This document shows positions 1 to 64,000 of a stretch of 64,000 nt of DNA, in pieces. The stretch is taken from positions 248,001 through 312,000 of the forward strand of contig CDRNVI010000048.1 in NCBI GenBank assembly GCA_977017575.1, written 5' to 3'. The notes beneath the pieces were generated by a model. The model had not been told where the DNA came from. It saw only the letters and a list, made by a program, of their open reading frames with translations, and did not search any database. A program made the translations under genes and the position numbers. This DNA is from Paramoeba atlantica (Eukaryota > Protista > Discosea). The first letter of the stretch is position 1. Every line of letters begins with the position of its first letter.

Positions 1-121
1 CCCAACTACCCAATTCATGGGATTTTTCTTCGTGGACAGAATTCTGATTAGAATCCATGATTCCAGGGTCGAAAGGTGTGTCCTCAGGATGGTTGTCTGG
101 GTGTGTCTCGTTCATCACCAT
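1..121 (-). CDS. N-terminus of a CRE-clade retrotransposon ORF (family F0), running off the window start
   Basis: Manual translation from ATG at 121: MVMNETHPDNHPEDTPFDPGIMDSNQNSVHEEKSHELGSW. It ends in the GSW(DQF) motif found at the N-terminus of families C, D and E and lies just downstream of an SL-like 36-mer. Not in the ORF track. Confidence 0.75.
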   Translation of the reverse strand, partial: MVMNETHPDNHPEDTPFDPGIMDSNQNSVHEEKSHELGSW

Positions 122-156
122 CAAAAAGAGAGTAGACAAAGAAAAAGAAAATAATT

Positions 157-192
157 CAACAAGGTACAGAAACTGTATCTTTATCGTTAAAG
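157..192 (-). ncRNA. SL-exon-like 36-mer heading family F0 (no intron follows)
   Basis: Minus strand CTTTAACGATAAAGATACAGTTTCTGTACCTTGTTG. It has the kinetoplastid/diplonemid SL core ACAGTTTCTGTAC and a TTG end, but is followed by AATT rather than a GT donor. Confidence 0.8.
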
Positions 193-562
193 AATCCTTA
201 AAATCCTTTTTTTTTTTTTTTTTTTTTTTGGGAAAGATTAGTTGTGTTAATAAAAGTTGCTATATCGGCAGTCTTGATTTTTTTTTTTTTTTTTTGATAA
301 GTAGCGTACAAGACTGAAAAATTCTTTCTTCTAAAATATATTCTATTTTTTTTATTGTCCTAAGAATCTTCTAATATATTTCTCCAAAAACCACTCTATC
401 TTTTTTTTTTCTCTTAATTTGTTGAGCTCTCCTGTACCTATCTGCTCCATAATACATTAATAGAAATATCTTTTTTTTCCACCTCAAACGTTCAAGACTG
501 AAAAATTCTTTCTTCTAAAATATATTCTTCTTTGCTGAGTAGTGTTCAGCGAAAGATCCCGC

Positions 563-1750
563 TTTTTTTTTTTTATATTACCCATTATGCGAACCAAGTA
601 GGTCCATTGGGGGGGATATGAATGTATGTAAATTTCTTAGTTTTTCCTCCTTCCACAAGCAATCAGCCCACCCCAAATTAGCAAAAAATTTCCCCCCACG
701 AAGCCGCCTCCCTGAAGAGAAATGCAGTGAAAAAGTGACACCCGAAAGGTAAAAACACCCGGGGGTTTTTTCTATCCCCCCCACACTTTGCCCTACCCCC
801 CACAATTAAATCCCAGCTCGTACCGGTTGAGCTCGCGAGTAGAAAACCCATTTCGCATGAACATTACTCTTCAATTCCGTATCCATTAATAATCGCGTCG
901 GGGGATGATGTAGGCAGCCGCAATACGAGCATACGAGCTTGTGCCCTCATTAGGGCGACGTTTAGTGTCGTCCCCAGTTGGTGTAGTGCTTCCCCCTTCG
1001 AGAGCGTGCCCCCGGAGTACGCTGCCCGGGAAGTGGAGACTTCCTTGAGTATCGCGAAGGAACTGGGGCACCATGCCCCGTATGACTCCACCACCATAGC
1101 GCCAAACTTGTGACGCGCTGCGTCTGCTTCCTCTCTTTGTTTCTTCTTGTTCTCCGTTGCGTAGCGCTCCGCAAAAGACCCCGCCTTCACCCAGTTAGCA
1201 TCACGGACTAAGTCCGTATACTTTGGCTGCTGAACATGAGTGACAGCGAAGTCTAATACAAGAGACTGGCCTACGTCGAAAGTAGAGAGGAAGACGTCCC
1301 CTGGCCTAGTGAGGGCGCCCCCAGGACCCGTGTTCCCCAGGCTCACTTCTCGCCGCGGGGTAAACCCAGCTTTCGCGCATTCTGAGGAGAACTGTCCCAC
1401 TATAGCGTTGTGTCGTGCTATGATACCGTGCCCGCACTTGCATACCAGTGCGTGATCACCCTCGGGGTCAAGTGGCAGGGCGCATTTCTCCATAGGACAT
1501 GGCCGGGAAGCCGGATAAATAGCGTCTCCGAGCCACCACCGCACAAGAGTACGAAATTCAGTTGGTGTGTAGGCTAAGCCGCTTTTCTTAGAGGGGATTA
1601 CGAAAGCCCACTCCGAGGCCCCTTCTCCCGTTTCCGATATCCATCTGGCCCTCGTTCGGAGATCGGCACGAGAAAAGGCCTCCCGAAATTCGCGGGAGGC
1701 GATGGCATGACTAAGATCACGCTGGATGGCATGACTAAGATCACGCTGGC
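563..1750 (-). mobile_element. 5'-truncated CRE-clade element, family A' (CCHC knuckle + REL endonuclease, 3' UTR, poly(A))
   Basis: Frame open 1724-864 (QRDLSHAI...CPMEKC...HALVC...RHN...PGDVF...DFAVTH...VESYGAW...GYGIEE*). 3' UTR 863-576, poly(A) 575-563, and a 24-nt tandem duplication (1701-1748) at the 5' break. Confidence 0.9.
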
Positions 1751-2081
1751 AAAAGTAGCACGGGTAGGTTATATATTCTATTTTTTTTTTTTTTTTAGTG
1801 GCTACTCTTACTCTTGCTGTCTTCTTTGGCTTAACGCTGTGAAGTTTTTTTTTTTTTTTTGAGAGGTCGTTGGCTGGAGAGCGAGTTCAGCGCTGGCAAA
1901 TCCATTAGAGTTTTTTTTTTTTTTTTTTTTTTTTACAATTATATTCGATAATTGGTATTAAGACCATAATATCTACTCCATAATACATTAATAGAAATAT
2001 CTTTTTTTTTCCACCTCAAACGTTCAAGACTGAAAAATTCTTTCTTCTAAAATATATTCTATTTTTTTTTTTTTTTTTTTT

Positions 2082-2727
2082 GCGATTAATAAGGGGGGAG
2101 AAGTATGAAACGCGGCATTGCCTCTATATTACCCAATACATGAACCATGAAGGTCCATTGGGGGGGGTATATGATTTGTAAACAAGCAATCAAATTAGCA
2201 ATTTCACATGTTGTAGCCCAAAACTAGTAATTCAACCTGCCTTAAGTTATTTATGATTCTGATAACAATAATAATAAAAAAGGAAGCAATCCACGCCCAA
2301 TCCATCCGCGCGTTCCGGACCGGGTCTTTCGACCTCTCCACGGCCTGACTTGTAAACCCTTCCCTTGTTATATGGGAGGGCGCAGGCGCGGGCCTGTGTC
2401 GGCAGCGACACGGTCACGAAACAGGATGCTGGCCGACGGGGAGGAGATTCACTACCCGTGTACTACCTCACTTGGGGTACCTAGCCCTCGCGGACTAGGC
2501 GTGAGTATAGACTCTGTCGACTCGACCAGCATCCCGACCAGCTCTTCATGGGTGCAAACGTGTTCCCGTGCCAAAAGGGGCGCGGTCGACGTTTACGAAC
2601 GTTTACACCTCCGTAGGAGAGAGCGGATCCTCAGGAAGTAAACGAGTAACCATCATGCGCGCCTGAAGGCGCATGAGGGTGACGTTCAGCTCCGTAAAGA
2701 TTCTGCTCGTGGCTTCCCCCTCTGTCT
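2082..2727 (-). mobile_element. 3' end of CRE family F8 (about 40 C-terminal codons + structured 3' UTR + poly(A))
   Basis: 2727-2603 translates TEGEATSRIFTELNVTLMRLQARMMVTRLLPEDPLSPTEV*, homologous to the C-termini of families C and G. It is followed by the conserved structured UTR and the shared terminal module. Confidence 0.85.
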
Positions 2728-2954
2728 TTTTTTTTTTTTTTTTTTGCGATTAATAAGGGGGGAGAAGTATGAAACGCGGCATTGCCTCTATATTACCCAA
2801 TACATGAACCATGAAGGTCCATTGGGGGGGGTATATGATTTGTAAACAAGCAATCAAATTAGCAATTTCACATGTTGTAGCCCAAAACTAGTAATTCAAC
2901 CTGCCTTAAGTGTGTCTTAACCTGTCTAACCTGTCTTTTTTTTTTTTTTTTTTT

Positions 2955-3137
2955 CTGAGCCTTCTCCCAAAGATCGTTCGTATTATCCTAAATCTCGCAG
3001 GCATTCTAAACACGGATAATCGTTGTGAATAATAATAAGAACTTTTAAGAGCTTTTCTAATGTGCGAACTTGTTGGTCGACTCACTGACGCAGTCCACCA
3101 ATCCAATGTGCTTCTGGAATATACTCGCGGAGCTGCG
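2955..3137 (-). mobile_element. Probable 3' end of a SLACS/CZAR-like element (second family) with poly(A)
   Basis: Translates TIVSQLREYIPEAHWIGGLRQ*, weakly resembling the C-terminus at 14093-14240 (YTIV...YPEGH). It is bounded by poly(A) on both sides. Confidence 0.4.
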
Positions 3138-3171
3138 ATACAATAGTATTTTTGATTTTTTTTTTGATTTT

Positions 3172-3612
3172 TTTAGGCATTATATCTCCGAGGAGATGTT
3201 ACCTCCCTAGAACAAGCCCCCCCTTATCGCTTGCTAGGAGCTGTGCCACGCAGCACGCAAGTCAAATCCGAAGATTTCACCAGATCGAGCGCGAGCAGCC
3301 AGCTTATCTTTTCTTTTTTTTAACCCCTTTCATATACTACAAGATCTTCTTTATGAAAAAAACACTTCTTTTGAAGTGAAAAAACACAACACACTCCAAA
3401 GATTATGCTGAATGACACCCACCCTAGTTCCTTAGTACCTTGTTATATCCGGTACCGGGCGGTGTCATTCTCACGCTGCAATGTCTGGGTGACCGTTACC
3501 CTAGTTATTTTGTGCCTTGTTTTGCTGGCACCGGGTAGTGTCATCCGCGGGGCCTTGATCGTACCCACCCTAGGTATGTAGCGTCTTGTTGTGCGACGCC
3601 GGGTGAGTGCCA
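3172..3612 (-). mobile_element. Poly(A)-tailed copy of the structured non-coding element also inserted at 15393-15909
   Basis: Near-identical to the reverse complement of 15466-15892. It ends ...GGAGATATAATGCCTAA-poly(A). Confidence 0.85.
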
Positions 3613-3655
3613 CCTTAGAGGTCCTCCTCGATCTCGTTATTGTGTGCTTTACCTT

Positions 3656-4323
3656 GAAATCCACGCCGAGGGGGCTCCATGAAACTTATAAGTAACAAAG
3701 AAATATAAGTAAATACCTATGACTAATATAATCACACTTCCAAATCGTCCCAAAATCAAAGAACACATAATACGTTATATAGATAGAATTCACATGCACA
3801 AACAAGTTCAAAAGAAAGCCTGCATAAAACCAATAATAATGTGTCACGTTGTTAACGGGATTCCCCCCCACCGGAACCCTCGGCCAAATGGCTGGGGGCT
3901 TGGTGGGTTGGCACAAAAACTTAAAGCAAAGTAAAATAACAACCTAACAAGGATATATAAGATAATAGTAAATACCCATCCCATGTAAAATTCTGAATAC
4001 AAATCATAATTCGAAGAAACTATGTGCCCCGAAGGGCCAGCAGGCAAATACATAACAGCCCCTCGGCTAAATTTCAAAACGTGGACTATTAGAAATCCAC
4101 GCCGAGGGGGCTCCATGAAACTTATAAGTAACAAAGAAATATAAGTAAATACCTATGACTAATATAATCACACTTCCAAATCGTCCCAAAATCAAAGAAC
4201 ACATAATACGATATATAGATAGAATTCACATGCACAAACAAGTTCAAAAGAAAGCCTGCATAAAACCAATAATAATGTGTCACGTTGTTAACGGGATTCC
4301 CCCCCACCGGAACCCTCGGCCAA
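3656..4323. repeat. 232-bp direct repeat (3656-3887 / 4092-4323, period 436) around an AT-rich spacer that recurs at 13919-14093
   Basis: Direct sequence comparison. Confidence 0.85.
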
Positions 4324-4483
4324 CCTGCCCACACACACGTCACACAATCAATATAAATAACCAAAGAAATGCCCAATCACATAGTAAAATAATTTTTCAT
4401 ATACCATCCCAGAACTCACAAAAGGATAACGATAGCAATAGATGACCAGTCCACTGCCACGCCCTTTACAAGCTCACACGAGC

Positions 4484-4712
4484 TACGCAGGTTACGCTTT
4501 TAACCTCTGCCCTAGACCAACTTGTGTACCTAGAAGTGTGGAGCAACTAGGCGTGATGCGTAGGGCCGTGTCAACAGTGACGCGGCTAAAAAACATTAAG
4601 GCGCTAACCGCAGAGCAAAGGAAACCTTTACTCATCTCTACCTCACATTGGGGAACCTTGCTTCCGAAAAAACAAGGCGTGAGAATAAAGAGCTGTTAAC
4701 CGATTAACATCC
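4484..4712 (-). ncRNA. Divergent homolog of the CRE structured 3'-UTR RNA (family not otherwise represented)
   Basis: Same ordered motifs as the C/D/E/G UTRs (CTCAC-G-hairpin-TTCCCCAATGTGAG; GCGTC/GACAC hairpin; GGTTA/TAACC hairpin) with compensatory changes. Confidence 0.7.
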
Positions 4713-5093
4713 ATAACCTTCCAAAATTATAGGGACAACCTCCAAACCCCAGGACCCCGTCCGCTTTTTTTCTTTCTTTTTTTTTTTTTTTTGTCTTTGT
4801 TTTTTTTCTTTTTTTCTTGTCTTTGTTTTTTTTTCTTTTTTTCTTGTCTTGTTTTTTTTTTTTGACGATAGCAATGTGTTTTGCATTTATTACAACTGTC
4901 CAATTACGTATCCAAAAGTCTTAATCCCGAAACTAGCAAACCAAAAACTAGCAAAACCCCTACCTCCCCTCAAAACGCCAACCCCGTACCTTAAAATCCG
5001 CAGGAAATCCGGACGCTGGCCACATCCCCCCATCATAGAAAAGGGCCCCCCACCCAAGAAAACTCCCAAGAAAATCCGCGGGTTCCACGAAGA

Positions 5094-6814
5094 CTACTCT
5101 TCGTTCCCGTACCCATTAACACAGATATCGGGGGAGGCTGCGGGGAGGCGCAGTACAAGCATACGAGCTTGTGTCCTCATGAGGGCGACGTTCAGCGTTG
5201 TCACCAGTTGATGAAGGGCTTCACCCTTCGAGAGTCCCCCGGAGTACGCTGACCGTGAAGCAGCTACCTCCTTGAGAATGGCGAAGGCACTGGGACTCCA
5301 TGCCCCGTAGGTCTCCACCACCATAGCACCAAACCTGTGGCGTGCGGCTTCTGCTTCCTCTCTTTGTTTCTTTTTATTTTCCGTCGCGTAGCGCTCCGCG
5401 AAAGACCCCGCTGCCACCCAGTTAGCGTCACGGACTAAGTCCGTATACTTTGGCTGCTGGACGTGAGTGACAGCGAAGTCTAATACGAGAGACTGGCCTA
5501 CGTCGAATGTGGAAAGAAATACGTCCGCTGGCCTGGTGAGGGTGCCTCCGGGGCCCGTATTCCCCAGACTCACTTCTCGCCGTGGGGTAAACCCGGCTTT
5601 GGCACACTCTGTTGTGAACTGTCCCGCAATGGCGTTGTGCCGTGCGATTATGCCGTGCCCGCACTTGCATACCAGTGCGTGGTCACCCTCGGGGTCAAGC
5701 GGCAACGAGCATTTCTCCAGAGGACAGGGCCGGAAAGCTGGGTAAATAGTATCCCCGAGCCACCAACACACAAGAGTACGGAATTCAGTCGGTGTGTAGG
5801 CTAAGCCGCTTTTCTTGGAAGGGATTACGAAAGCCCACTCCGAGGCCCCTTCTCCCGTTTCCGATGTCCATCTGGCCCTCGTTCGAAGGTCGGCACGAGC
5901 AAACGACTCCCGAAATTCGTAGGAAGCGATGGCATGACTCAGATCGCGTTGGCGAGGAATTACCAGCTCTGTGCTAGGTTCTTGTGCATCGTTATTCGAG
6001 TTAAGCGTGGTCATCGACAATGCGAGGCTTTTTGATATTAATCCGCACTGTTCGACGACTGCCGTCCCGGTGCGTTTGTTGACCTCCCGAACAGCTTGGG
6101 TGAACCCCTCAGCGTCCTCTGGGTCCCACCGGTCTTTGTTTGATGCAAAAGCGACGGAGGCTACGTAGGCGGAACTCGCGTGTTCCTCCGCTGACCGGAG
6201 CCCCAACCCCCCGTACCGCTTTTCACGTTGAGCCTGGCGTCGGGCCCCATCGCTCAGAGGGCGAAAGAAGTGTTCAGTGGTACGCTGGACGGCATCGTCC
6301 AGGCGTTTGCAGATATCCTGTAGTTCAGCGGTCGGAGTGGATCTGAGAGAGTACACCATTTGACAGAAACCGGTACAGTGTCGGATCAGAGACAATGCAA
6401 TCTGGGGATCATCAAGCGTGGTTATGGCCTCCAACGGCTCTTCGGCTAAGTCGATTGCGTTTTTGAGGAAGAACTCTCGGCAAAATTGGGTGGATCCAAC
6501 CGGGCTCCCCAAAATATGGAAATTACCTTCCCCATTTTTGTTCAAACCGGGAATGTCGGGGAAAAGGGAAGAACGGTGGGAGGAAGCGGGGTGTGATATA
6601 AGCTCGCACTTTGCTACGTTGAGGTGTAATCCCCATTTTGGGCCGGTTATCGCAATCACGTCTAGAGCATGCCGTACGTCGCAAGATGGTCCTGCTAGTA
6701 CCCCGTCATCCAAGAACCACAGGTTGAGGTCGAGGTTTGGGGCGGCCACACGGATTTTCCATGCGACTTCTTTCATGACCAGTGAGAAAAGAAGAGGTCC
6801 AAGCGGGTCGCCTT
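5094..6814 (-). pseudogene. Family A ORF, 3' part (RT C-half, thumb, CCHC, REL endonuclease)
   Basis: ORF track 5094..6824. The first residues of that ORF come from the SINE tail. Confidence 0.9.
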
Positions 6815-7199
6815 CCAAATCCAAAAATCCAAATCATTCCGGATTGCTCCGGATGGTCACTGGCAAGCCAGACCCTTCACAGACAGATTTGGAAGTTCCA
6901 AGGCCGACGTCCTCTACCAGTTTCCGCTTGTCCAAGGCGGCACCAACGTGCTGTTACCAACACGCTGCGTCAACGAACTGTACGTCAACACGGCTTACCC
7001 AAGAGGTGTAAGCCGGGTAAGGGAGCTGGTTCCCTGAGGGGAGGGTCCGGGACGGTCCTCCGAGTACTGGGCCTAGTCGGTTATCAGCCCAGCCTCTTAG
7101 AGTGAGGCCGCCGGGAATATTGCGATGAGCGGGTTTGAACTCGCCGTCTGAGCACCATGTGCTTCAAACTTTGAATTCTTGCCACTCCGCCACCTCCGC
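6815..7199 (-). mobile_element. tRNA-headed SINE, copy 1 (~385 bp, GGATTT-repeat tail)
   Basis: A box TGGCGGAGTGG, B box GTTCAAACC, terminal hairpin TCCGGA-GCAA-TCCGGA and tail GATTTGGATTTTTGGATTTG. Near-identical to 11710-12098. Confidence 0.85.
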
Positions 7200-7203
7200 T
7201 CTA

Positions 7204-7322
7204 AGAGTACAACACTCAGGGTTCCCGAGCGATCGCTCACCTCAGTACTAACTGAGCCTGACGGTGCTTAACTTCACAAAGCGAACGGGATGTGGTGTTT
7301 TCACCGTAGTATGGTCGTACCC
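7204..7322 (-). rRNA. 5S rRNA copy (119 nt), retro-inserted upstream of SINE copy 1
   Basis: GGGTACGACCATACTACGGTGAAAACACCACATCCCGTTCGCTTTGTGAAGTTAAGC...GTTAGTAC...GTGTTGTACTCT, closely following the trypanosomatid 5S pattern. Confidence 0.92.
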
Positions 7323-7349
7323 ATTAGTATGGTCGTACCCAATTAGTAT

Positions 7350-9204: not shown

Positions 9205-9248
9205 GTTTTTTTTTTTTTTTTTTTTTTTGTATTTGGTGATCCTGTCCC

Positions 9249-53133: not shown

Positions 53134-53173
53134 GAGAGTTTGCGTGCAGCCGTCTTTTTTTTTTTTTTTTTTA

Positions 53174-53991
53174 TTTCCACAGAAGTATATTTTCTTTTTC
53201 TTTTTTCTAAGCCCAAAACTAGCAATTCAATCTCCCCTAAGTATATACGACAAACAAGAAACAGTAAAAATAAAAACAAGCAATCCAGGCCCAATCCATT
53301 CGCGCGTTCCGGACCGGGTCTTTCGACCTCTCCACGGCCTGACTTGTGAACCCTTCCCTTGCTATACGGGAGGGCGCAGGCGCGGGCCTGTGTCGACAGC
53401 GACACGGTCGCGAAACAGGATGCTGGCCGACGGGGAGGAGATTCACTACCCGTGTACTACCTCACTTGGGGTACCTAGCCCTCGCGGGCTAGGCGTGAGA
53501 CTTCACCCGCTTCTTTCCCTCACTTCCCCCCCCCCCGAGCATCCATCCGCGCCTTCCAAACTTTGCCCTCCTCTTTCCCTCACTTCCCCCCAGAAATCAA
53601 TCCGCGCGTGCTCCACCCCTTCTTCCAGCAGTGCGCGCTTCGGACCGGGTCTCTCGACCTCTCCACGGCCTGGCTTGGGAACCCTTCCCTTGTTATGCGG
53701 GAGGGCGCAGGCGCGGGCATGTGCCGACAGCGGCACGGTCACGAAGTTGGGTTTTGATCGCCGGATTCGGATGAATGTTTTTTTTGCAATTAATAAGGGG
53801 GGAGATGTATGAAACGCGGCATTGCCTCTATATTACCCATTATGCGAACCAAGTAGGTCCATTGGGGGGGATATGAATGTATGTAAATTTCTTAGTTTTT
53901 CCTCCTTCCACAAGCAATCAGCCCACCCCAAACTAGCAAACAATTTCCCCCCACGAAGCCGCCTCCCTGAAGAGAAATGCAGTGAAAAGTC
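53174..53991 (-). mobile_element. Chain of UTR fragments: 205-nt mini-element, poly(A), G-type UTR fused to E-type UTR, poly(A)
   Basis: 53786-53991; 53499-53777 matches the G UTR; 53174-53498 matches the E/D UTR. Confidence 0.8.
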
Positions 53992-54015
53992 TTTTTTTTT
54001 TTTTTTTTTTTTTTG

Positions 54016-56917
54016 TCTTTTTTACTTACTTTCCTACTTACTTTACTTCGCCCTTATCAACTTCGCCCGCTTCTCTCCCTTATCTCCACCCCTCAAAGAA
54101 ACCATCCGCGACTTTCCGACTTCACCCGCTTCTTTCCCTCACTTCCCCCCCCCCCGAGCATCCATCCGCGCCTTCCAAACTTTGCCCTCCTCTTTCCCTC
54201 ACTTCCCCCCAGAAATCAATCCGCGCGTGCTCCACCCCTTCTTCCAGCAGTGCGCGCTTCGGACCGGGTCTCTCGACCTCTCCACGGCCTGGCTTGGGAA
54301 CCCTTCCCTTGTTATGCGGGAGGGCGCAGGCGCGGGCATGTGCCGACAGCGGCACGGTCACGAAGTTGGGTTTTGATCGCCGGATTCGGATGAATGTTCC
54401 GAATCCATACCTGTCTCACATTGGGGTACCTTGCTCGTGAAAGCGAGGCGTGAGGATAGGCACTGTCGGCTCGATCGGCCTCGGGCCGCTCTGGAGGCTA
54501 TTCCTCCAGAGTTGCGATGGGGTCTTCGGAAGGTGAACGAGCAACCATCATGCGCGCTTGAAAGCGCATAAGGGTTATGTTTAGTTCAGCGAAGATTCGG
54601 CTCGTTGCCTCACCTTCCGAAAGTAGACCCCCCGAGGCGTGCGAACACCTCTCACCGACTTTGCGGAGCACGGCTGAAGCGCTGGGGCTCCAGGCGCCAT
54701 AACTTTCGACAACCATGGCCGTAAAGTCGCATCCTGCCTCTACGGCTTCTCGACGCTGCTTGCCCTTCTCCATTGAGGAATAATGTTCGGCAAATGACCC
54801 CGCGGCAACCCAGCTAGCGTTTCGGACTTTGTCCGTATATTTTAATTGCTGAGCATGGGTGACCGCGAAGTCAAGCACAATGGGATTTCCAAGAAAAAGG
54901 CTGGGCAAGTATATGTCGCCAGGTCTGGTGAGGGCCCCGCCTGGGCCCCTGTTCCCGAGACTCTTTTCTCGTTGAGGGGCGAGGCGGGCTCGACTGCACA
55001 CGTCCGCGAACTGGTCCGTAACAGCGTTGTGCCTGGTCACAATACCATGGCCATGTTTGCAAGACAGTGCATGGTCCCCTTTGCTGTCAAGGGGGAGCGA
55101 GCATTTCGGCATGGGGCACGTGCTATCTTCATGGTAGATGTCCACGCCTAACCACCAACGGGCCAAAGTTCGGAATTGTGTGGGGGTAAAGGCGTGCCCA
55201 AGGTCTTTCGAAGGAGTCACAAAGGCCCAGCTGCTCGCTCCCGTGCCACACTGGGAGATCCACCTTGCACGGGTTCGTGCGTCAGTTGTCTCATATTCCT
55301 GGGAAAAGGCATGGGCTGCAATAGCATAACTGATTACCCGCTGGCGCGGGATCTTCCCTTTGGGCCACTGTGGGGGTAGCATGTCCTGGCATTCTTCAGA
55401 ACCGTAGAGGGGAGTCGAGAGTGGGTAGGCATCCGTGGGTGTGTTGGCCGTGCGGGAAGTCGTACGAAGAATATGTCCCGGAGGCTCGTCCGGGGGGTGA
55501 GGATCATTCCCTGGCGGAGGGCGCCTTCTCTTCCGGTAGGAGTACGGCGCGCTCAGGGCCTTCTCGCATGGGGCGTTGGGAGTCGTGAGAACACGACCTC
55601 GGGGATCGAGGAGAGCAGTGCCGGCCTTCTGATTGATGTCGAGGATGGCCTCCGAGAAACCTTCAGCGTCTGTGGGATCCCAGGAATCTGTGGCAGAGGC
55701 AAAGGCGACGGATGCAACGTAAGCCGCGGAAGCGTGGAGAGCTGCGGATCTCAGACCTAATCCCCCATGACGCTTCAGTCGCTGTGCTTGAGATTGTGCT
55801 GACCTGTCCAGAGGACAGATGATTGCCTCTATAGCGGTCATGAGAAAGTCGTCTAAACGGGAGCAAAGGTGAATCAGGGACTGTGGGGGCGTGCTTCTCA
55901 TGGCATACACCATTTGACAGAACCCCGCACATTGACGAATTAGGGCAAGCGCGACCTGGGGGTCCTGAATGTTGGTGATGGCATCGAGGGTATCCTCGGC
56001 TGGTTCTAGGGCGTGAGAAAGAAGATAAGCAGAGCAGTGGTCGGCGGATCCTACAGGACTCCCTAGTATGTCAAAGTTCCCCTGCGAATTGATCTTCTCG
56101 TCGGGTATGTCTGGGAAGTAATCAGCCTGGTGGGCCGAGCTGGGGGAAGTAATAATTTCGCATTTCGACGTATTGAGATACAAGCCCCATTGAGGTCCTA
56201 CTCGGGCGATCGTGTCTAGGGCGTCTCTAACTTCCTGCGCCTGGCCAACGAGGACGCCATCGTCGAGATACCAGAGTTGGGCGGGAATATCAGTTTGAAG
56301 GTTAATGGCTTCTGAGAGCTCCAGGGCCACTAACGAGAAGAGCAATGGTCCTAGGGGATCGCCCTGTTGTACTCCTTCCTCGGAGGAGATGAATCGGGCC
56401 CCGTAGGTAAGAGAGATGGGGTCGGAATAGCACCAATTGATCCAAGGGAAGAGTTCCGGGAAATATTCCTGTACTAGTGGAAGGAAGGCAGCCCTGCTTA
56501 CGTTATTGAAAGCGTTACGTAGGTCCACTTTGCACATGACGAAGTTCGGGTTTTCCATATTGGACGACATGGCCAGGCGACACATGTGAATGACTCTTTC
56601 GGCCCCGGCTGTCGCTGCCACTCCGTACTGTTTGCCTTCAAAGAGCTCGCTCGCTTTGGGTCGGATTGCGTTGCATACGGCTTTGCTCGCTAATCGCCGA
56701 AGGGTTTCACCGGCAGCGATCGGACGAACATCATTTTCGCCCTTTGATAGGGCGCATAAGCGCGCCCCTGCGAAGTGCGCCTGTACTTCAGAGGGTGCCT
56801 TCCCAGCTAGGAGGTGATTTGTTAGCTTTGTGAGGGATCGGAGAAAGTCATTTCCGTGTACGAGCAGTGCTGCCTGTAGGTGCTCTGGGCGTAAGTTCCT
56901 CTTTAAGTAGTTCCTCT
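54016..56917 (-). mobile_element. 5'-truncated CRE family G copy 1
   Basis: Frame open 56894-54498 (LRPEHL...RT...REL...PIATLEE*); GAGGAAC is duplicated at the 5' break. Confidence 0.9.
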
Positions 56918-57079
56918 TTTTTTTTTTTTAGCAAATCTTTTTGTTTCCACAGATGTACCTTTTGTTTTTTTCTCTCAGCCCAAAACTAGCAATTTAATCT
57001 CCCCTAAGTATATACTACTTCTTTTTACACTTTTTTACTACTTTTTTTTACTACTTTTTTTTTTTTCCTCTTTTTTTGC

Positions 57080-60000
57080 AATAAATAGGGGGGGAGAAGT
57101 ATAAAACGCGGCATTGCCTCTATATTTTTACTCAGTAGACGAACCAAGTAGGTCCATTGGGGGGGGTATATGATTTGTAAACAAGCAATCAAATTAGCAA
57201 TTTCACATTTTTTTTTTTTAAAGTTAGGCTCAGAATAGAAACAAGCAACTGTACGAAAAGTAAAAGAATGTTCAACCGAGCAAACGGCCCAAAAAACAGC
57301 AAATAAGAACCCGTTCCCACCCCCAAAAAAAACCTTCCCCAAAAAACGAATACCCAAAGCCCCAAAAAGAAACCACCCGAGAAAACCAGCCAATAGAAAC
57401 GAGGCCTCCTCCCTTGACACCGACTCCTTCACTTTCCTACTGAGCTCCTACTCCTCTTTTCCGTAACCTAAGAGCACTGTGTCAGGGACCGCCGCTGGGG
57501 ATCGTAATACAAGCATGCGAGCTTGCGACCTCATGAGGGTAATGTTGAGAGATGAAAGGAGGTGATGCAAGGCATCGCTTTTAGGGAGGGTATCCCCTGA
57601 GTTCGCCATCTTTTTAGTTGAAATTTCCCTAAGAACCGCCATGGCGCTGGGACTCCAGGCGCCATAGGACTCTACTACCATTGCCGCGAACTTGTACCCA
57701 GCCGTGTTAGCCTCTTCCCGTTGTCTTCTCTTGTTCTCGGTAGCATAGCGCTCCGCAAATGACCCGGCCGTCACCCCGTTAGCGTCACGGACTGAGTCCG
57801 TATATTTTTGTTGCTGTACATGGGTGACGGCAAAGTCAAGCACAAGACCCTCGCCAAGCCCGAAATTTTTGATGAAGACATCACCAGGCCTGGTGAGGGC
57901 GCCCCCCTGCCCCTTGTTTCCCAAGCTCATTTCCCTCTGGGTAGTGAACCCAGCCTTAGAACATTCAGAAGAAAATTCTGCGGCCAGGGCATTATGCCGC
58001 GAGGTGATACCATGTCCACTTTTGCAAGCCAATGCGTGATCGCCCTCAGGACCCAACGGTTGGGTGCACTTCTCCATGGGACAAGATCGGGGACCCGGAT
58101 ATATTTGCTCCCCTAGCCACCAACGTCCAATCCAATCCAATCCAAAAGACCGACATATGTCGGTTAGAATGTTAAATGTTTTCCCCCCGAACTTATACTC
58201 CCTCGCCTTCCAGTTCAGAGTTTAGTAGTGCCTACTATTTTACTTTCACACAATACTTTTCCTTATCTTCCTGAACTCTTCCTCAGGGTATTCCGAACCT
58301 GCTGGTGGAAGCACGTCTTCCGCCCAACTCTTACTATGAAGGCGCCCTCTTCCCACCAGTTTTCGCAATCTTCCCGCACAGCTTGACTTTAGCCTCGGCG
58401 CCGCGCTTGGGTGCTGGATTGGTTTTCGTCTTTCCCTTTTCCAAGGTTCTATGTTTTATCAGCTTTTCCAAGGATTTGTCGATTTGTGATGCGTTGGAAT
58501 CATTACTTGTTTTTCTCTTTTTCTGCTCAGGCGGTCGAGGAACTTTTCGCGCTGCAATCAGTGCTAACCCATCTGCCTCCTCGTTCCATTTATTTCCTGA
58601 GTGACCCTTGACTTTGCACATATATATTGAGTAGAAATCATGTTTTAAGGACCGTAATTTTCCGTCTAACTGGGAGAACAAATCTCCATTTAAAACCCCC
58701 TTGTAACCAACGATTCGCCACCAACGTACCAGAGTCCGAAACTCGGTTGGGGTATAAGCGTGGCCGTTCTTTTTCGACGGCAATACAAAAGCCCATTCTG
58801 CTGCTCCGTGCCCCGTTTCCGAAATCCATCGAGCCCTCGTACGTGGGTCAGCGAGGGAGAGTGCTTGATGAAACTCGTGAGATGAGATTGCATCGCTTAG
58901 ATCTCGTTGCCGAGGGATTACTGTTTCGGTACTGGATTCTGTAATGCCACGTTTACTGAAAGGCGGAGTGGATGACAAGGCGAAACCTTTCGGTATTCTC
59001 CCTGATTGAATGTCTACGATGTCTTTCCCCACCCTTTTATTGACATCGCTTACGGCTTCTTCGAAACCTTCTGCCTCCGTGGGGTCCCAGCGATCTAGCT
59101 CCGATGCAAATGCGACAGAGGCGATATAGGCTGAAGTAGAGTGCTCTTCCGCGGAACGGAGTCCTAACCCGCCAAATCGCTTGTTTCGTTGTGTTTGACG
59201 GCGGGCCTCGGGGGTCAGAGGACGGAAAAAATTCTCTACCGCGCGTTGCACGGCGTCGTCCAAGCGCCGACAGAGATCCCGAAGTTCAGATGTTGGGGTT
59301 GTTCGTAGGGAGTAAACCATCTGGCAGAAGCCAGTGCAGTGACGAATGAGGGATAAGGCAACCTGGGGGTCTTCGAGGTGCGTTATAGCGTCCAGAGAAT
59401 CTTCTGCCATTTCGACTGCATTGTTGACGAGATATTCACGACAAAACTCTGGCGATCCAACGGGGCTTCCCAGAATGTAAAAATTGCCTTCGAGGTTTTT
59501 GTTAGGGCCAGGGAGATCGGGAAAAACAGAAGAACGATGAGAAGATGCTGGGTGGGTAATAATCTCGCATTTTGCAGCGTTGAGGTGTAGGCCCCATTGT
59601 GGACCCTTCATTTCGATAACGTCGAACGCGTGTCGCACATCACAGGAAGTGCCAGCCAAAACGCCATCATCCAGGTACCAGAGGCTTAGGTCTAATTTGG
59701 GGGCTGCTGCGTGAATTTCTGAGGCGACTTCCCTCATGACTAACGAGAAAAGAAGAGGGCCCAAGGGGTCCCCTTGCTGGACACCCTCACGAGATTTAAT
59801 AACGCGTGTTCCAAAGGTAAGCTTACTTTCCGAAGTGTAGCACCATTCGACGTAAGGAGTAAGCGTGGGGAAATGCTCGCGTGTTAGTGCTATGAACCAG
59901 TCCCTTGAAACTTGGTTGAAGGCATTACGTAGGTCGATTTTACAGAGAACAAAGTCGTCATCTTCCGTGCGAGCAGCAAAGGCCTGGCGACACAGATGTA

Positions 60001-60663
60001 TAACTCGCTCGGCCCCGGCGGGCGTGGCTACCCCGTACTGATGGCCTTTGAAAATTTTGCGGGCTCGCGCTTTTACTGATAGGCAGGCCACTTTACTCAC
60101 CAGACGGCGGAGCGTTTCTCCATCGGCTATTGGGCGCACGTCGTGTTCTCCCTTTTCCAAAGCACATAGCCTTCCTCCGGCAAAGTGGTCTTGAACGTCG
60201 AGTGGTAACTTCCCAGCGAGCATATGGTTGGTGAAATTTGTGAGCGTGCCCAGTGGATTTGTGTGCCCGTCATTGTGATATTGCATTGCCGCTTGCACGT
60301 GTTCTGGGCGGAGGCAAAGTGCGCCACCTGATGATCCTCTGTGGAAGGTTGAGAGCGCAGCTGCGACTTCTTCCTCGGTGACTTTGAGTGGTTCTGTTTC
60401 CGGAGTTAAGCTGGGGGATGTTGTGGATGCGGAGATTCGTGGGGGGTGTTTGGCCTGAAGTTTGGCGTACGTGTTGTCGTCGTCTGGTGCTAGCGGCGAA
60501 GAAGTCAGTGCGGTCATGGCGCGAGAAAGTTCTCCGTCGCGGGCCAGTCGCTCCGCGCGAAGACACGCTTTCTTCCCCTCGTCTTCTAGGCTTGTTGCTT
60601 GCGCAGCACGTTTCTTACGATTCAAAGTCTTACATGTTTCGTTCCAAAGTGATAGATATTGTC
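57080..60663 (-). mobile_element. 5'-truncated CRE family H, interrupted by an RNase H LINE fragment
   Basis: RT 60663-58717, endonuclease 58126-57448 (...GYGKEE*), related to A and A'. Confidence 0.9.
58127..58716 (-). mobile_element. 3' end of an RNase H-encoding non-LTR element with a (GGATT)3 tail
   Basis: 11-bp TSD ACGTTGGTGGC (58116-58126 / 58717-58727). RNase H motifs NGDLFSQLD...KVKGHSGNKWNEEADGLA. Terminal palindrome ACCGACATATGTCGGT. Confidence 0.85.
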
Positions 60664-60689
60664 TTTTTTTTTTTTTTTTTTTTTTTTTT

Positions 60690-61290
60690 GCAATTAATAA
60701 GGGGGGAGATGTATGAAACGCGGCATTGCCTCTATATTACCCATTATGCGAACCAAGTAGGTCCATTGGGGGGATATGAATGTATGTAAATTTCTTAGTT
60801 TTTCCTCCTTCCACAAGCAATCAGCCCACCCCAAACTAGCAAACAATTTCCCCCCACGAAGCCGCCTCCCTGAAGAGAAATGCAGTGAAAAGTCTTTTTT
60901 TTTTTTTTTTTATGCGTTCAAGACTGAAAAATTCTTTCTTCTAAAATATATTCTATGAATGTACGGTATCCCTTTCTTACTTACTTTCCTACTTACTTTA
61001 CTTCGCCCTTATCAACTTCGCCCGCTTCTCTCCCTTATCTCCACCCCTCAAAGAAACCATCCGCGACTTTCCGACTTCACCCGCTTCTTTCCCTCACTTC
61101 CCCCCCCCCGAGCATCCATCCGCGCCTTCCAAACTTTGCCCTCCTCTTTCCCTCACTTCCCCCAAGAAATCAATCCGCGCGTGCTCCACCCCTTCTTCCA
61201 GCAGTGCGCGCTTCGGACCGGGTCTCTCGACCTCTCCACGGCCTGGCTTGGGAACCCTTCCCTTGTTATGCGGGTACCTTTTTTTTTTTT
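60690..61290 (-). mobile_element. Fragment chain: partial G UTR, AT-rich piece, poly(A), 205-nt mini-element
   Basis: 60955-61278 matches the G UTR; 60917-60955 matches 2022-2061; 60690-60894 is the mini-element. Confidence 0.75.
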
Positions 61291-61299
61291 TTTTTTTTT

Positions 61300-64000
61300 T
61301 TACTTTACTTCGCCCTTATCAACTTCGCCCGCTTCTCTCCCTTATCTCCACCCCTCAAAGAAACCATCCGCGACTTTCCGACTTCACCCGCTTCTTTCCC
61401 TCACTTCCCCCCCCCCGAGCATCCATCCGCGCCTTCCAAACTTTGCCCTCCTCTTTCCCTCACTTCCCCCCAGAAATCAATCCGCGAGTGCTCCACCCCT
61501 TCTTCCAGCAGTGCGCGCTTCGGACCGGGTCTCTCTACCTCTCCACGGCCTGGCTTGGGAACCCTTCCCTTGTTATGCGGGAGGGCGCAGGCGCGGGCAT
61601 GTGCCGACAGCGGCACGGTCACGAAGTTGGGTTTTGATCGCCGGATTCGGATGAATGTTCCGAATCCATACCTGTCTCACATTGGGGTACCTTGCTCGTG
61701 AAAGCGAGGCGTGAGGATAGGCACTGTCGGCTCGATCGGCCTCGGGCCGCTCTGGAGGCTATTCCTCCAGAGTTGCGATGGGGTCTTCGGAAGGTGAACG
61801 AGCAACCATCATGCGCGCTTGAAAGCGCATAAGGGTTATGTTTAGTTCAGCGAAGATTCGGCTCGTTGCCTCACCTTCCGAAAGTAGACCCCCCGAGGCG
61901 TGCGAACACCTCTCACCGACTTTGCGGAGCACGGCTGAAGCGCTGGGGCTCCAGGCGCCATAACTTTCGACAACCATGGCCGTAAAGTCGCATCCTGCCT
62001 CTACGGCTTCTCGACGCTGCTTGCCCTTCTCCATTGAGGAATAATGTTCGGCAAATGACCCCGCGGCAACCCAGCTAGCGTTTCGGACTTTGTCCGTATA
62101 TTTTAATTGCTGAGCATGGGTGACCGCGAAGTCAAGCACAATGGGATTTCCAAGAAAAAGGCTGGGCAAGTATATGTCGCCAGGTCTGGTGAGGGCCCCG
62201 CCTGGGCCCCTGTTCCCGAGACTCTTTTCTCGTTGAGGGGCGAGGCGGGCTCGACTGCACACGTCCGCGAACTGGTCCGTAACAGCGTTGTGCCTGGTCA
62301 CAATACCATGGCCATGTTTGCAAGACAGTGCATGGTCCCCTTTGCTGTCAAGGGGGAGCGAGCATTTCGGCATGGGGCACGTGCTATCTTCATGGTAGAT
62401 GTCCACGCCTAACCACCAACGGGCCAAAGTTCGGAATTGTGTGGGGGTAAAGGCGTGCCCAAGGTCTTTCGAAGGAGTCACAAAGGCCCAGCTGCTCGCT
62501 CCCGTGCCACACTGGGAGATCCACCTTGCACGGGTTCGTGCGTCAGTTGTCTCATATTCCTGGGAAAAGGCATGGGCTGCAATAGCATAACTGATTACCC
62601 GCTGGCGCGGGATCTTCCCTTTGGGCCACTGTGGGGGTAACATGTCCTGGCATTCTTCAGAACCGTAGAGGGGAGTCGAGAGTGGGTAGGCATCCGTGGG
62701 TGTGTTGGCCGTGCGGGAAGTCGTACGAAGAATATGTCCCGGAGGCTCGTCCGGGGGGTGAGGATCATTCCCTGGCGGAGGGCGCCTTCTCTTCCGGTAG
62801 GAGTACGGCGCGCTCAGGGCCTTCTCGCATGGGGCGTTGGGAGTCGTGAGAACACGACCTCGGGGATCGAGGAGAGCAGTGCCGGCCTTCTGATTGATGT
62901 CGAGGATGGCCTCCGAGAAACCTTCAGCGTCTGTGGGATCCCAGGAATCTGTGGCAGAGGCAAAGGCGACGGATGCAACGTAAGCCGCGGAAGCGTGGAG
63001 AGCTGCGGATCTCAGACCTAATCCCCCATGACGCTTCAGTCGCTGTGCTTGAGATTGTGCTGACCTGTCCAGAGGACAGATGATTGCCTCTATAGCGGTC
63101 ATGAGAAAGTCGTCTAAACGGGAGCAAAGGTGAATCAGGGACTGTGGGGGCGTGCTTCTCATGGCATACACCATTTGACAGAACCCCGCACATTGACGAA
63201 TTAGGGCAAGCGCGACCTGGGGGTCCTGAATGTTGGTGATGGCATCGAGGGTATCCTCGGCTGGTTCTAGGGCGTGAGAAAGAAGATAAGCAGAGCAGTG
63301 GTCGGCGGATCCTACAGGACTCCCTAGTATGTCAAAGTTCCCCTGCGAATTGATCTTCTCGTCGGGTATGTCTGGGAAGTAATCAGCCTGGTGGGCCGAG
63401 CTGGGGGAAGTAATAATTTCGCATTTCGACGTATTGAGATACAAGCCCCATTGAGGTCCTACTCGGGCGATCGTGTCTAGGGCGTCTCTAACTTCCTGCG
63501 CCTGGCCAACGAGGACGCCATCGTCGAGATACCAGAGTTGGGCGGGAATATCAGTTTGAAGGTTAATGGCTTCTGAGAGCTCCAGGGCCACTAACGAGAA
63601 GAGCAATGGTCCTAGGGGATCGCCCTGTTGTACTCCTTCCTCGGAGGAGATGAATCGGGCCCCGTAGGTAAGAGAGCTGGGGTCGGAATAGCACCAATTG
63701 ATCCAAGGGAAGAGTTCCGGGAAATATTCCTGTACTAGTGGAAGGAAGGCAGCCCTGCTTACGTTATTGAAAGCGTTACGTAGGTCCACTTTGCACATGA
63801 CGAAGTTCGGGTTTTCCATATTGGACGACATGGCCAGGCGACACATGTGAATGACTCTTTCGGCCCCGGCTGTCGCTGCCACTCCGTACTGTTTGCCTTC
63901 AAAGAGCTCGCTCGCTTTGGGTCGGATTGCGTTGCATACGGCTTTGCTCGCTAATCGCCGAAGGGTTTCACCGGCAGCGATCGGACGAACATCATTTTCG
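61300..64000 (-). mobile_element. CRE family G copy 2 (continues beyond the window)
   Basis: ORF >64000-61759 differs from G1 at one residue in the ORF track. Confidence 0.92.

Follow-up and report, generated by a model that had tools for sequence, protein, structure and literature searches.

The retrotransposons CRE1/CRE2, SLACS and CZAR of trypanosomatids occupy one fixed site in the exons of spliced leader (SL) RNA genes, with half of the exon on either side. HeT-A/TART/TAHRE of Drosophila, which are APE-type elements of the jockey clade, are joined to free chromosome ends without target duplications. Clusters of poly(A)-joined non-LTR elements, in tandem or nested, abut canonical telomere repeats near the telomeres of Giardia (GilM/GilT) and Chlorella (Zepp); GilM/GilT bear a restriction-like endonuclease (RLE), and Zepp nests into its own earlier copies. 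New copies of L1/Alu favour the tails of older copies in the same orientation, the L1 nuclease being of the APE type and its T-rich primer pairing with the tail, and chimeric insertions made from several templates occur both with L1/Alu and through template jumping by the R2 RT. In dinoflagellates, genomic copies of retrogenes open with a relict SL, and SL doublets, in which a new SL was spliced onto an AG inside an older one, point to repeated transcription, trans-splicing and retroposition (PMC6050394).

The locus described here, called the window (the whole 64-kb stretch of contig C48 that was analysed), resembles the trypanosomatid systems in its euglenozoan host, in elements with one long ORF encoding N-terminal zinc-finger-like motifs, RT and a C-terminal RLE, in their poly(A) tails and in their physical association with SL sequence. 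It differs from them in that the element heads are whole SL exons from trans-spliced mRNA, with no SL gene parts, and in that its families are dispersed, their mapped targets being edges of A-runs. The head-to-tail, one-way, multi-family and often 5'-truncated arrangement, with poly(A) directed away from the contig end, recalls the Drosophila arrays; in contrast to these, the elements are of the RLE type, some units carry target duplications, and chains occur internally as well. Tail-to-head clustering is shared with GilM/GilT and Zepp, but no link of the window chain to a terminus was found, and its copies are SL-headed. SL-first genomic copies and an SL doublet (53084-53139) are found as in dinoflagellates, although there host genes are retroposed, whereas in this kinetoplastid-like organism autonomous retrotransposons and their parasites are recycled. 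Landing at older tails in the same orientation, as with L1/Alu, and putative multi-template chimeras, as with L1/Alu and R2, are features of the window too; unlike in L1, the nick at the A-run edge leaves a non-T primer (three mapped cases), and the chains reach tens of kilobases.

Results

Polarity, junctions and SL exons

The plus strand of the window contains 34 T-runs of at least 10 bases (median 19, longest 33) and not a single A-run of that length, which confirms the statement of the initial annotation that more than 30 poly(A) tracts all lie on the minus strand. T12 words were counted 304 times, against 0.17 expected from shuffled sequence. All ORFs of at least 300 aa in the window-wide list are on the minus strand as well, and self-comparison returned 344 direct HSPs and two inverted ones, the latter representing a single 435-bp pair. 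The fusion of tails to the 5' ends of other copies also proved correct: each unit abuts the preceding tail either directly or across 1-20 extra bases (Table 1).

Nine copies of the SL exon were located in the window, all on the minus strand. Six are complete heads immediately following poly(A), where extra or garbled bases may be seen at the joint; two lie 360 nt within C units and one at position 179. Thus poly(A) is joined straight to SL at 6 of the 34 junctions, and the other 28 are free of SL. As annotated previously, neither an SL intron nor an SL promoter was found anywhere in the window; both were likewise missing from the first 300 nt beyond the proximal-most clear tails, and from the stretches of contigs C9 and C41 that were examined. 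Genuine SL genes (...GTTAACTTTAACG...GTTG, followed by the intron start GTATGAG) are found on C97 and C107, in clean 2.56-kb tandem arrays, whereas the window heads consist of the whole SL exon joined to the element 5'UTR. The copied RNAs are mature trans-spliced mRNAs. In the head of D4 the SL exon is followed by a second, partial SL beginning after the SL-internal CAG; this doublet is a product of re-splicing at that CAG, and D4 was copied from a genomic copy that was already SL-headed. About 535 SL exon copies are present genome-wide, on both strands, and those on C1 form same-strand blocks. Among the contigs listed, approximately one quarter of SL exons stand right behind at least 10 A's; since about three quarters of the SL-headed copies do not, A-run edges are a preferred target and not the sole one.

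Table 1. Features of the window (window coordinates; all on the minus strand)
Feature	Position	Strand	Remarks
SL-headed element, 5' part	1..206	-	SL exon end near 150-206; 5'UTR begins AATTAT
Twelve chained units, each ending in poly(A), 48-1611 nt long	207..4863	-	mostly severely 5'-truncated 3' ends, several families
RLE-domain fragment, 1.2 kb	575-1780	-	within chain 207..4863
Three short fragments (127, 50, 48 nt), each with a tail, forming a mini-chain	1797..2061	-	tails A24, A16, A16
RT/RLE element, 4.34 kb	4864..9205	-	ORF frameshifted; 8-bp target-site duplication CAAGACAA on both sides
Composite poly(A)-ended unit, 7.15 kb	9206..16381	-	360-nt leader (common to C units) + passenger retroelement
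C unit, two tandem copies	16382..26106	-	99.98% identical, period 4,862 bp; each with 360-nt leader, SL exon, split 618 + 687 aa ORF, A19 tail
D1, full-length D element	26107..30340	-	complete SL exon head; intact 1196-aa ORF (zinc fingers, RT, RLE); A33 tail
Poly(A)-ended unit, 561 nt	30341..30929	-	A28; between E1 and D1
E1, SL-headed E element	30930..35375	-	ORF broken near 3' end; A20 tail; GACT between poly(A) and SL
Shared 3'UTR module fragment, 110 nt	35376..35511	-	A26 tail
D2, SL-headed	35512..39650	-	intact 1196-aa ORF; A30 tail at upstream 3'UTR site, just past C-run
E2, SL-headed	39651..44069	-	intact 1266-aa ORF; A24 tail at alternative poly(A) site
5'-truncated 3'UTR fragment, 359 nt	44070..44456	-	A28 tail
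D3, SL-headed (head GCTAACG...)	44457..48667	-	intact 1196-aa ORF; A23 tail
Module F, non-coding, 206 nt	48668..48900	-	start always GACTTTTCACTGC; end = shared 3' module + poly(A); may be a SINE-like parasite
D4	48901..53154	-	intact 1196-aa ORF; 9-bp direct repeat GACGGCTGC on both flanks
Unit of 819 nt	53155..53991	-	module F head, different 3' end; A18 tail
Composite unit, 7.26 kb, tandem	53992..64000	-	99.8% identical; repeat reaches contig end C48:319,756; 5'-truncated G element (707-aa RT/RLE ORF), two small fragments, H element (763-aa RT ORF), module F, 367-nt fragment

Element families

Eight of ten scanned ORFs of at least 300 aa matched RVT_1 (Pfam), and the RT sequences fall into about eight lineages at 45-70% amino acid identity; the earlier figure of about 10 CRE families is thus too high, and membership in the CRE clade is unproven. 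The identification of RT-bearing non-LTR retrotransposons of a euglenozoan was upheld; both RT and RLE are present, and the closest named relative is annotated as a SLACS RT. The best relatives of solved structure are R2 RTs, and a conserved block (CCHC...RHN...PD...D.VT...E) runs through the window families and their distant homologs. Judged by sequence, the elements appear to be R2/CRE-like, RLE-bearing non-LTR retrotransposons. The passenger retroelement of the 7.15-kb unit, one ORF of which gave an RT_RNaseH Pfam match of 18.2 bits, below the cut-off of 24.8, is putatively of the tyrosine-recombinase type (YR).

The four D copies are 99.4-99.95% identical to one another, D1, the most proximal, having diverged slightly more than D2-D4, and the two E copies share 99.4% identity. 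Recent activity of the elements, proposed from such near-identical intact copies, is upheld. Four of about ten young D copies (0-6 differences per 1400 nt) are located in the window. Approximately 11 of 13 D-type full-length heads (nine independent loci and the four in the window) stand immediately behind an A-run or A-rich tract.

Contig context

Beyond the window the chain continues for 7.7 kb, to C48:319,756, where the contig stops inside the 7.26-kb tandem unit with no telomere repeat, probably because the assembler could not resolve this unit. Tails span C48:241,055 to that end, and farther left transposable element (TE) sequence is present in both orientations, with opposite-strand elements converging at C48:~232.8 kb. 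The element cut by the left window edge has its body beyond that edge, and the next clear A-tail downstream is at C48:243,021-243,037. The TE island is larger than the window and extends over at least 77 kb; its right boundary is off the contig, the left stretch examined still ends in TE sequence, and a terminal position is possible. No Pfam-recognisable host gene was found across this island of at least 90 kb, and four flank ORFs gave no match. Tandem duplication accounts for some of the length (the 4.86-kb unit twice, the 7.26-kb unit at least 2.4 times), and the duplicated blocks carry identical junctions.

One-way chains were also found internally, at 310-332 kb on C41, a contig of 474 kb, and at 287-301 kb on the 760-kb contig C9; they are 140-460 kb away from contig ends. 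The families are scattered genome-wide on both strands, and proximal and distal units alike have 99-100% identical copies elsewhere, with no age gradient. Elements were detected in four public sequencing runs (samples S1-S4) of one study, which consist of short unitigs ending at poly(A) tracts, and junctions of these types are seen again on many contigs, as well as on contig L021 of an ENA assembly that was deposited separately and may or may not be independent of this genome.

Eight other contig ends bear a purine-only repeat, (GAGGAAGAAA)n, of telomere-like polarity, which is a candidate telomere repeat; (TTAGGG)4 was absent except on one contig of a co-assembled organism. On C41 and C13 a single retroelement, 5' end outward, adjoins (GAGGAAGAAA)n, and on C45 a gene lies beside it on the minus strand.

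Target-site duplications

Contrary to the initial annotation, which saw no short target-site duplications, at least three units or mini-chains carry duplications of 8-10 bp: the 4.34-kb unit, D4 and the three-fragment mini-chain, which is enclosed by a single 10-bp direct repeat, TAGAATATAT, and may have arisen by template jumps during a single integration. None of these three clear duplications consists of SL sequence, and among far pairs of A-runs a shared prefix of at least 5 bases occurred in 0 of 998. The insertion point of the 4.34-kb unit coincides precisely with the 3' edge of an A-run. Its filled site reads A23-CAAGACAA-(4.34 kb)-A12-CAAGACAA-GAAAAAAAG, and a paralogous empty site (C41:309,340-309,500) reads YR 3' end-A9-CAAGCCAAGAAAAAAAG. 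Target duplications together with an empty paralogous site indicate intercalation, because addition to an end yields no duplication; since the 4.34-kb unit and D4 each have a duplication of their own, and one has an empty site, growth was stepwise. A recognisable duplication is present in just three or four units, and the nick-site rule is extrapolated from these, as at most junctions a duplication would be made up of A's or masked by SL.

Discussion

The data make it probable that the island was built from inside, by insertion at the 3' edges of A-runs, and that it is not a chromosome end growing outward. The latter proposal, that serial attachment of element RNAs lengthened a chromosome end in the manner of HeT-A/TART with its tip at higher coordinates, was one of two models offered initially, and it is not supported. 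The chain does reach the contig end with all its 5' ends facing it, as a telomeric array would, (TTAGGG)4 is confined to one contig of the co-assembled organism, retroelements with the 5' end outward lie beside (GAGGAAGAAA)n on C41 and C13, and D1 is a little more diverged than the D copies distal to it. However, the contig ends within the 7.26-kb tandem unit and not in a terminal repeat, similarly built chains occur inside C41 and C9, copies of the families are scattered over both strands, no age gradient accompanies the 99-100% identical copies elsewhere, and a simple repeat of telomere-like polarity caps eight other contig ends. Target duplications within the array and an empty paralogous site are impossible by end addition, and we regard such a telomere as improbable. 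Slightly better, though still unlikely, is a passive graveyard, a gene-poor region (for instance a strand-switch or centromere-like one, of the kind known from trypanosomes) where insertions of any kind persist and orientation is selected for co-transcription. The lack of recognisable host genes, the convergence of opposite-strand elements left of the window and the same-strand blocks on C1 would fit it, but it leaves unexplained the base-for-base abutment of tails and heads, the insertion exactly at A-run edges and the position of D-type heads behind A-runs at scattered loci.

The second initial model joined two ideas, of which one fails as stated. Enlargement of a genuine locus of SL RNA genes through insertions specific for SL sequence, as with CRE/SLACS/CZAR, could account for the SL exons of the window, six of them exactly after a tail, and for the annotation of the closest named relative, and a poly(A)/SL boundary would conceal a duplication. 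We nevertheless consider it extremely unlikely, because the heads are complete SL exons from trans-spliced mRNAs and not SL genes interrupted at a fixed internal site; moreover, SL intron and promoter are absent from all stretches searched, the real SL genes reside in clean arrays elsewhere, most junctions are away from SL, and the clear duplications lack its sequence. The other idea, that the RT jumped serially between templates, can plausibly be invoked for short chains, given three fragments within one 10-bp duplication. That one or a few integrations made the whole chain, with RT hopping from the capped 5' end of one RNA to the poly(A) of the next, would also agree with the extra or garbled bases at poly(A)/SL joints, expected from copying through a cap, and with known properties of the R2 enzyme, which reportedly jumps between templates (Bibillo and Eickbush). 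Yet the separate duplications of the 4.34-kb unit and D4, the empty site and the already SL-headed template of D4 argue for stepwise growth, and at least 64 kb in one go is implausible; the chance that this occurred is small. An assembly or library artefact, whether concatenated cDNA-like molecules or mis-joined repeats, might be suspected, as the available unitigs end at the tails, none of them spanning a junction, and the contig ends in a repeat. It is very unlikely in view of the recurrence of junction types across contigs and L021, the identical junctions in duplicated blocks, the presence of the elements in four runs, and duplications with a matching empty site, which are biological signatures.

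Growth by insertion at A-run edges would involve about eight related non-LTR families, encoding zinc-finger-like motifs, RT and RLE, together with short non-coding parasites sharing a common 3' module and passenger RNAs. The template would be mature mRNA, full-length copies opening with the complete 38-39 nt SL exon and ending at variable poly(A) sites, and integration would proceed by target-primed reverse transcription. Judging from three or four cases, the first nick would fall where an A-run ends on its 3' side, this run being in most instances the tail of a resident copy, and the second 8-10 bp downstream, so that the newcomer sits just behind the resident tail. The pile would have grown one-way because new copies land at the ends of older tails; as all units share one direction, each insertion would add a tail and with it a landing site of the same polarity, which may be the cause of the fixed orientation. 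In some integrations several cDNAs were possibly joined 5' end to poly(A) by RT template jumps, and unequal exchange would have duplicated the 4.86-kb and 7.26-kb blocks. SL junctions would look seamless because, where SL lies behind an A-run, the newcomer's own SL overlaps the duplication. The poly(A)/SL boundary would then be a natural case of a general target, the 3' edge of an A-run, and transcription and trans-splicing of the resident copies may feed new insertions.

Organization and extent of the array

The initial annotation described a one-way array in which the poly(A) tail of each retrotransposon is joined to the head of another, and this core observation was confirmed. The forward strand of the window contains 34 runs of at least 10 T's, which are tails of minus-strand units, and no run of at least 10 A's; T12 words occur 304 times, against 0.17 expected from shuffles. 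All ORFs of at least 300 aa lie on the minus strand, and an RVT_1 match was found in eight of the ten scanned. On the minus strand, the 5' end of another unit lies right after each tail or is separated from it by 1-20 extra bases. Half of the units (17 of 34) are shorter than 600 nt, while 11 reach at least 3 kb. Family D is present in four copies, each with an intact 1196-aa ORF and with 99.4-99.95% identity among them; identity between the two copies of family E is 99.4%. These tail junctions rest on the assembly; the public data, four runs of a single study available as short Logan unitigs, break off at every tail. Comparison of the window with itself gave 344 direct HSPs and one inverted pair, one copy of which is thus antisense to the chain; this match may represent a terminal inverted repeat of the passenger, a retroelement located inside a 7.15-kb poly(A)-ended composite unit.

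The contig (C48; 319,756 bp, with the window at C48:248,001-312,000) continues with the same structure through its final 7.7 kb, and breaks off partway through a third 7.26-kb unit, with no simple or terminal repeat. The array reaches the contig end, and its true end is out of view; as the contig stops in an unresolved tandem repeat, this is no demonstrated chromosome end. Both the 7.26-kb units and the 4.86-kb pair of C-family units were added by tandem duplication. To the left of the window, clear minus-strand tails (at least 15 A's) are followed by more retroelements, and plus-strand copies face the array; the whole transposable element island is at least 90 kb long.

Locations of the features (positions within the window where so marked, otherwise on contigs of GCA_977017575.1)
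Feature	Location	Strand or orientation	Observation
7.26-kb unit copies	window 54,038-61,300 and 61,300-64,000	minus	99.8% identical (self-comparison)
C unit pair, 4.86 kb		tandem, minus	99.98% identical (self-comparison)
Split ORF of the C element	window 16938-20854, 21800-25716	minus	overlapping 618-aa and 687-aa frames
7.15-kb composite unit with passenger	window 9206..16381	minus	
Sole inverted match	window 3173-3608 and 15463-15893	inverted	94% over 435 bp
Mini-chain	window 1797-2061	minus	tailed fragments of 127, 50 and 48 nt
D4 head	window 53084-53139	minus	SL doublet
Leftward clear tails	C48:241,055-243,037	minus	
Facing copies, tails	C48 232.3-232.8 kb	plus	
Internal chain, C41	310-332 kb		474-kb contig
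Internal chain, C9	287-301 kb		760-kb contig
18-bp satellite (L020)	C9:301,323-302,404 and 304,910-305,496		about 60 and 33 copies
Bare SL exon (L012)	C9:271,8xx	minus	
SL RNA retrocopy (L010)	C6:27,09x	minus	
Array of one element type	C55:273,944-288,611	head-to-tail	four copies, about 3.99-kb spacing
Array of SL-headed copies	C1:9,752-25,062	head-to-tail	four copies, 5,093-bp spacing
(GAGGAAGAAA)n, right ends	C14, C25, C41, C43, C45	purine strand 3' toward end	
(GAGGAAGAAA)n, left ends	C13, C29, partly C17	as complement	
(GAGGAAGAAA)n, examples	L108 (C41:472,338-473,897), L107 (C45:348,429-351,045), L109 (C14:511,508-519,499)		
(GAGGAAGAAA)n, internal	C4:232,131 and C77:72,730		
(AGAGGGAGGA)n	left ends of C16, C43 (L023, L028)	polarity opposite to (GAGGAAGAAA)n	

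Class and relatives of the elements

The D and E proteins combine two N-terminal Cys/His finger-like motifs with a central reverse transcriptase (RT), recognized by RVT_1 with E-values of 1.5e-17 to 5e-19, whose best solved relatives are R2 proteins (8gh6, 8ibw, 9nl3, 9dou). Their C-terminal block (C..C..H..C, RHN, (R)P(A/G)D, D.(A/V)VT and E) has columns at least 90% conserved when five families of the window are compared with five distant homologs; a Leptomonas protein is among the homologs that share the block. At the motif level, this block carries the signature of the restriction-like endonuclease (RLE) of R2/CRE-type elements, a predicted nuclease of the PD-(D/E)xK type. A Pfam search of the window ORFs gave no Exo_endo_phos domain of an APE endonuclease, no LTR-like terminal direct repeats were present in the self-comparison of the window, and every unit in it has a 3' poly(A). 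Judged by all these features, the elements belong to the RLE-bearing non-LTR retrotransposons (R2/CRE/NeSL/R4 supergroup). Two matches give clues to a possible place within the CRE clade (CRE1/2, SLACS, CZAR): the best among named homologs comes from Diplonema papillatum and carries the annotation 'SLACS reverse transcriptase' (36% identity over 27% of the query), and the other is a Leptomonas protein. Members of that clade occupy a fixed site inside the exon of the spliced leader (SL) RNA gene, and the elements of the window do not.

About eight RT lineages could be distinguished, with 45-70% amino-acid identity to each other. Many units from different families share the 3' end ...CTTCTCCCCCCTTATTAATTGC-A(n), and short non-coding units, such as the one called module F, carry the shared 3' part only. 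The passenger retroelement gave an RT_RNaseH match below threshold only. In the two tandem copies of the C element the ORF is split at an identical point, which could reflect a frameshift mutation common to both or programmed frameshifting. An exact-protein look-up returned no record for the D ORF, one ENA contig carries a 99% relative at a different locus, and the ESM Atlas gave generic RT clusters only. Our literature search found no paper carrying this SL sequence, and no comparable analysis of transposable elements in the Diplonema genome paper.

SL-headed units

In the real SL RNA gene the exon passes into the intron as ...CCCTTGTTAACTTTAACGATAAAGATACAGTTTCTGTACCTTGTTG/GTATGAGAAG..., the intron beginning with GTATGAGAAG. 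Such true genes occur on C97, C107, C3 and C11, in clean tandem arrays on the first two contigs and in smaller groups elsewhere. All nine SL exon copies in the window lie on the minus strand. The SL intron and the promoter-proximal sequence have no match there on either strand, even when two mismatches are allowed. A full-length element starts with the whole exon, (A)nCTTTAACG...CCTTGTTG, followed by an element-specific 5'UTR. Judging from this structure, the heads are copies of mature, trans-spliced mRNA. The initial bases of a head are often garbled (T, GACT, GCT), as would result from RT copying through a modified cap. The tails are found at several different positions within the shared 3'UTR, in keeping with the heterogeneity of poly(A) sites in organisms that use trans-splicing.

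The head of D4 is a special case, in which a complete SL is followed by TTTCTGTACCTTGTTG, the SL portion downstream of its own CAG. This doublet indicates re-splicing: a transcript of a resident SL-headed copy was trans-spliced at that AG and then reverse-transcribed into DNA. The same 'relict SL' pattern is known from dinoflagellate retrogenes (PMC6050394), whereas D4 is an autonomous retrotransposon.

Genome-wide, about 535 SL exon copies are present on both strands, against only some dozens of real genes. On C9, a bare SL exon with neither body nor tail is inserted, with a copy of the 23-bp sequence GTTTACTGTTCTCGACAAAAGTT on each side. On C6, a retrocopy of the whole SL RNA (exon and intron, with the end ...GGGGCTT and a short A-run) is fused directly behind the coding sequence of an element, and looks like a template-switch chimera.

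Target duplications and A-run edges

The absence of short target site duplications, claimed in the initial annotation, proved to be wrong, as duplications were found at a 4.34-kb unit, at D4 and at a mini-chain of three fragments. For the first of them an empty site is available: a paralogue of the passenger 3' end on C41 reads ...CACCAAATAC-A9-CAAGCCAAGAAAAAAAG..., and the filled site in the window reads ...CACCAAATAC-A23-CAAGACAA-[4.34-kb RT/RLE element]-A12-CAAGACAA-GAAAAAAAG.... From this comparison, the 4.34-kb unit is an insertion with an 8-bp target duplication, the first nick having been placed exactly at the 3' edge of the A-run. D4 is flanked by two copies of GACGGCTGC, starting at the edge of an A-run (A18), and the fragments of the mini-chain lie between two copies of TAGAATATAT, the first directly behind an A-run. 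In the control, none of 998 A-run pairs more than 20 kb apart shared a downstream prefix of at least 5 bases. These three cases show stepwise insertion within the array. The enclosure of the mini-chain in one duplication suggests that a single event may carry several cDNAs via template jumps, such as R2 RT is known to make; alternatively, the fragments may have inserted one after another inside tails.

The preference for A-run edges is also visible beyond the window: of 13 full-length D-type heads (nine independent loci and four in the window), about 11 directly follow an A-run or A-rich tract, and the A-run in many cases belongs to a different element as its tail. In the contigs listed, about a quarter of SL exon copies are placed likewise. 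Four of the approximately ten young D copies in the genome reside in the array of the window. A 'GAC' motif following the tails was considered as a rule; it is enriched (9 of 77 distinct junctions) though not general, and was kept only within two duplications. Head-to-tail arrays of one element type were also seen on C55 and, with SL-headed copies, on C1.

The simplest account would involve target-primed reverse transcription at the A-run edge, with a second nick 8-10 bp downstream, a nick rule drawn from three or four cases. Each insertion would then add one more target of the same polarity. The common direction of the units is an observation, and what enforces it is inferred. Where a resident SL lies behind the A-run, the duplicated bases would coincide with the newcomer's own SL, and this overlap may be why no duplication is visible at the poly(A)/SL joints.

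Sequences at contig ends

The search for (TTAGGG)n proposed earlier gave a divided result: there is none at the C48 end, and (TTAGGG)4, occurring once, and (TTTAGGG)4, occurring thousands of times, are confined to small contigs of 32% GC, (TTAGGG)4 being absent from the 50%-GC, SL-using genome. These small contigs (from about C137 upward, for example L014, C205:1-10,000) lack long ORFs, end in (CCCTAAA)n and share repeats with each other alone, so they belong to a second, co-assembled organism; (TTTAGGG)n on them is therefore uninformative on the SL-using one. Certain small contigs in that range (C147, C185) nevertheless carry kinetoplastid-type elements. A Pfam Telomerase_RBD search for TERT gave zero matches, as did its controls, and thus carries no information on TERT.

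Among 72 sampled ends of the 50%-GC genome (60-200 nt each), eight terminate in a purine-only 10-mer repeat, (GAGGAAGAAA)n, whose purine strand in every case runs 3' in the direction of the contig end. Its arrays extend from 0.5 kb to at least 8 kb, and it also occurs internally at two sites. The repeat adjoins a retroelement whose 5' end faces it on C41 and C13, and a minus-strand gene on C45. The idea that the repeat belongs to the 5' part of the neighbouring element itself was rejected, as the C41 junction occurs only once in the genome and the neighbouring sequence is found dispersed elsewhere with no such repeat attached. We regard (GAGGAAGAAA)n as a candidate non-canonical telomere. A second purine-rich 10-mer, (AGAGGGAGGA)n, was found at two left ends.

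Origin and significance of the array

Two models had been proposed for the array, and neither was borne out. One of them, an SL RNA gene locus inflated by repeated insertion, is at odds with what was found around the junctions: no part of an SL gene is present in the window, in the initial 300 nt beyond the most proximal clear tails, or in the fetched stretches of C9 and C41, 28 of the 34 junctions lie away from any SL, the mapped duplications consist of non-SL sequence, and the mapped targets are A-run edges. The other, a retrotransposon telomere to which elements are added at a free end, would account for the orientation of the tails, all of which point away from the contig end (poly(A) proximal, 5' end distal), the one feature that fits. 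However, chains of the same build, with tails on one strand, lie internally on C41 and C9, and the families are dispersed over many contigs in both orientations, with no confinement to ends. Moreover, target duplications and an empty site inside the array would be impossible by free-end addition. The elements of a telomeric array would be confined to, or strongly enriched at, chromosome ends and added without target duplication, unlike those of the window. An age gradient along it was also rejected, since units at both of its ends have copies elsewhere that are 99-100% identical; D copies differ genome-wide by only 0-6 positions per 1400 nt, so that their parentage cannot be told. We thus consider a retrotransposon telomere very improbable. 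Immediately after its final poly(A), the C9 chain passes into an 18-bp satellite, (CTTTTGTTAAGACCCTTT)n.

A broader scenario would place the C48 array next to a real chromosome end, in a genome whose ends lack TTAGGG and are capped by (GAGGAAGAAA)n, with 5'-outward retroelements building or healing them. Such a role of retroelements is hinted at by the element-to-repeat junctions on C41 and C13, and we give this scenario only a slim chance.

The simplest account of the array is thus a self-seeding nest of R2/CRE-like retrotransposons, which copy trans-spliced mRNAs and land at A-run edges. The structure is real and its explanation is ordinary in kind; it is no new telomere system. The T-free terminal repeat (GAGGAAGAAA)n is of interest in itself. 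If the proposed account is true, a euglenozoan R2/CRE-like lineage would be without a single genomic address, using A-run edges instead, and its transposition intermediate would be an ordinary trans-spliced, polyadenylated mRNA. The 'relict spliced leader' signature of RNA recycling, described in dinoflagellate retrogenes, would then also apply to autonomous retrotransposons in a relative of the kinetoplastids. Each earlier insertion would serve as a landing pad, leading to self-extending one-way arrays of tens of kilobases. This would provide a simple mechanistic route to telomere-like arrays that are no telomeres, and a caution for the interpretation of long-read protist assemblies.
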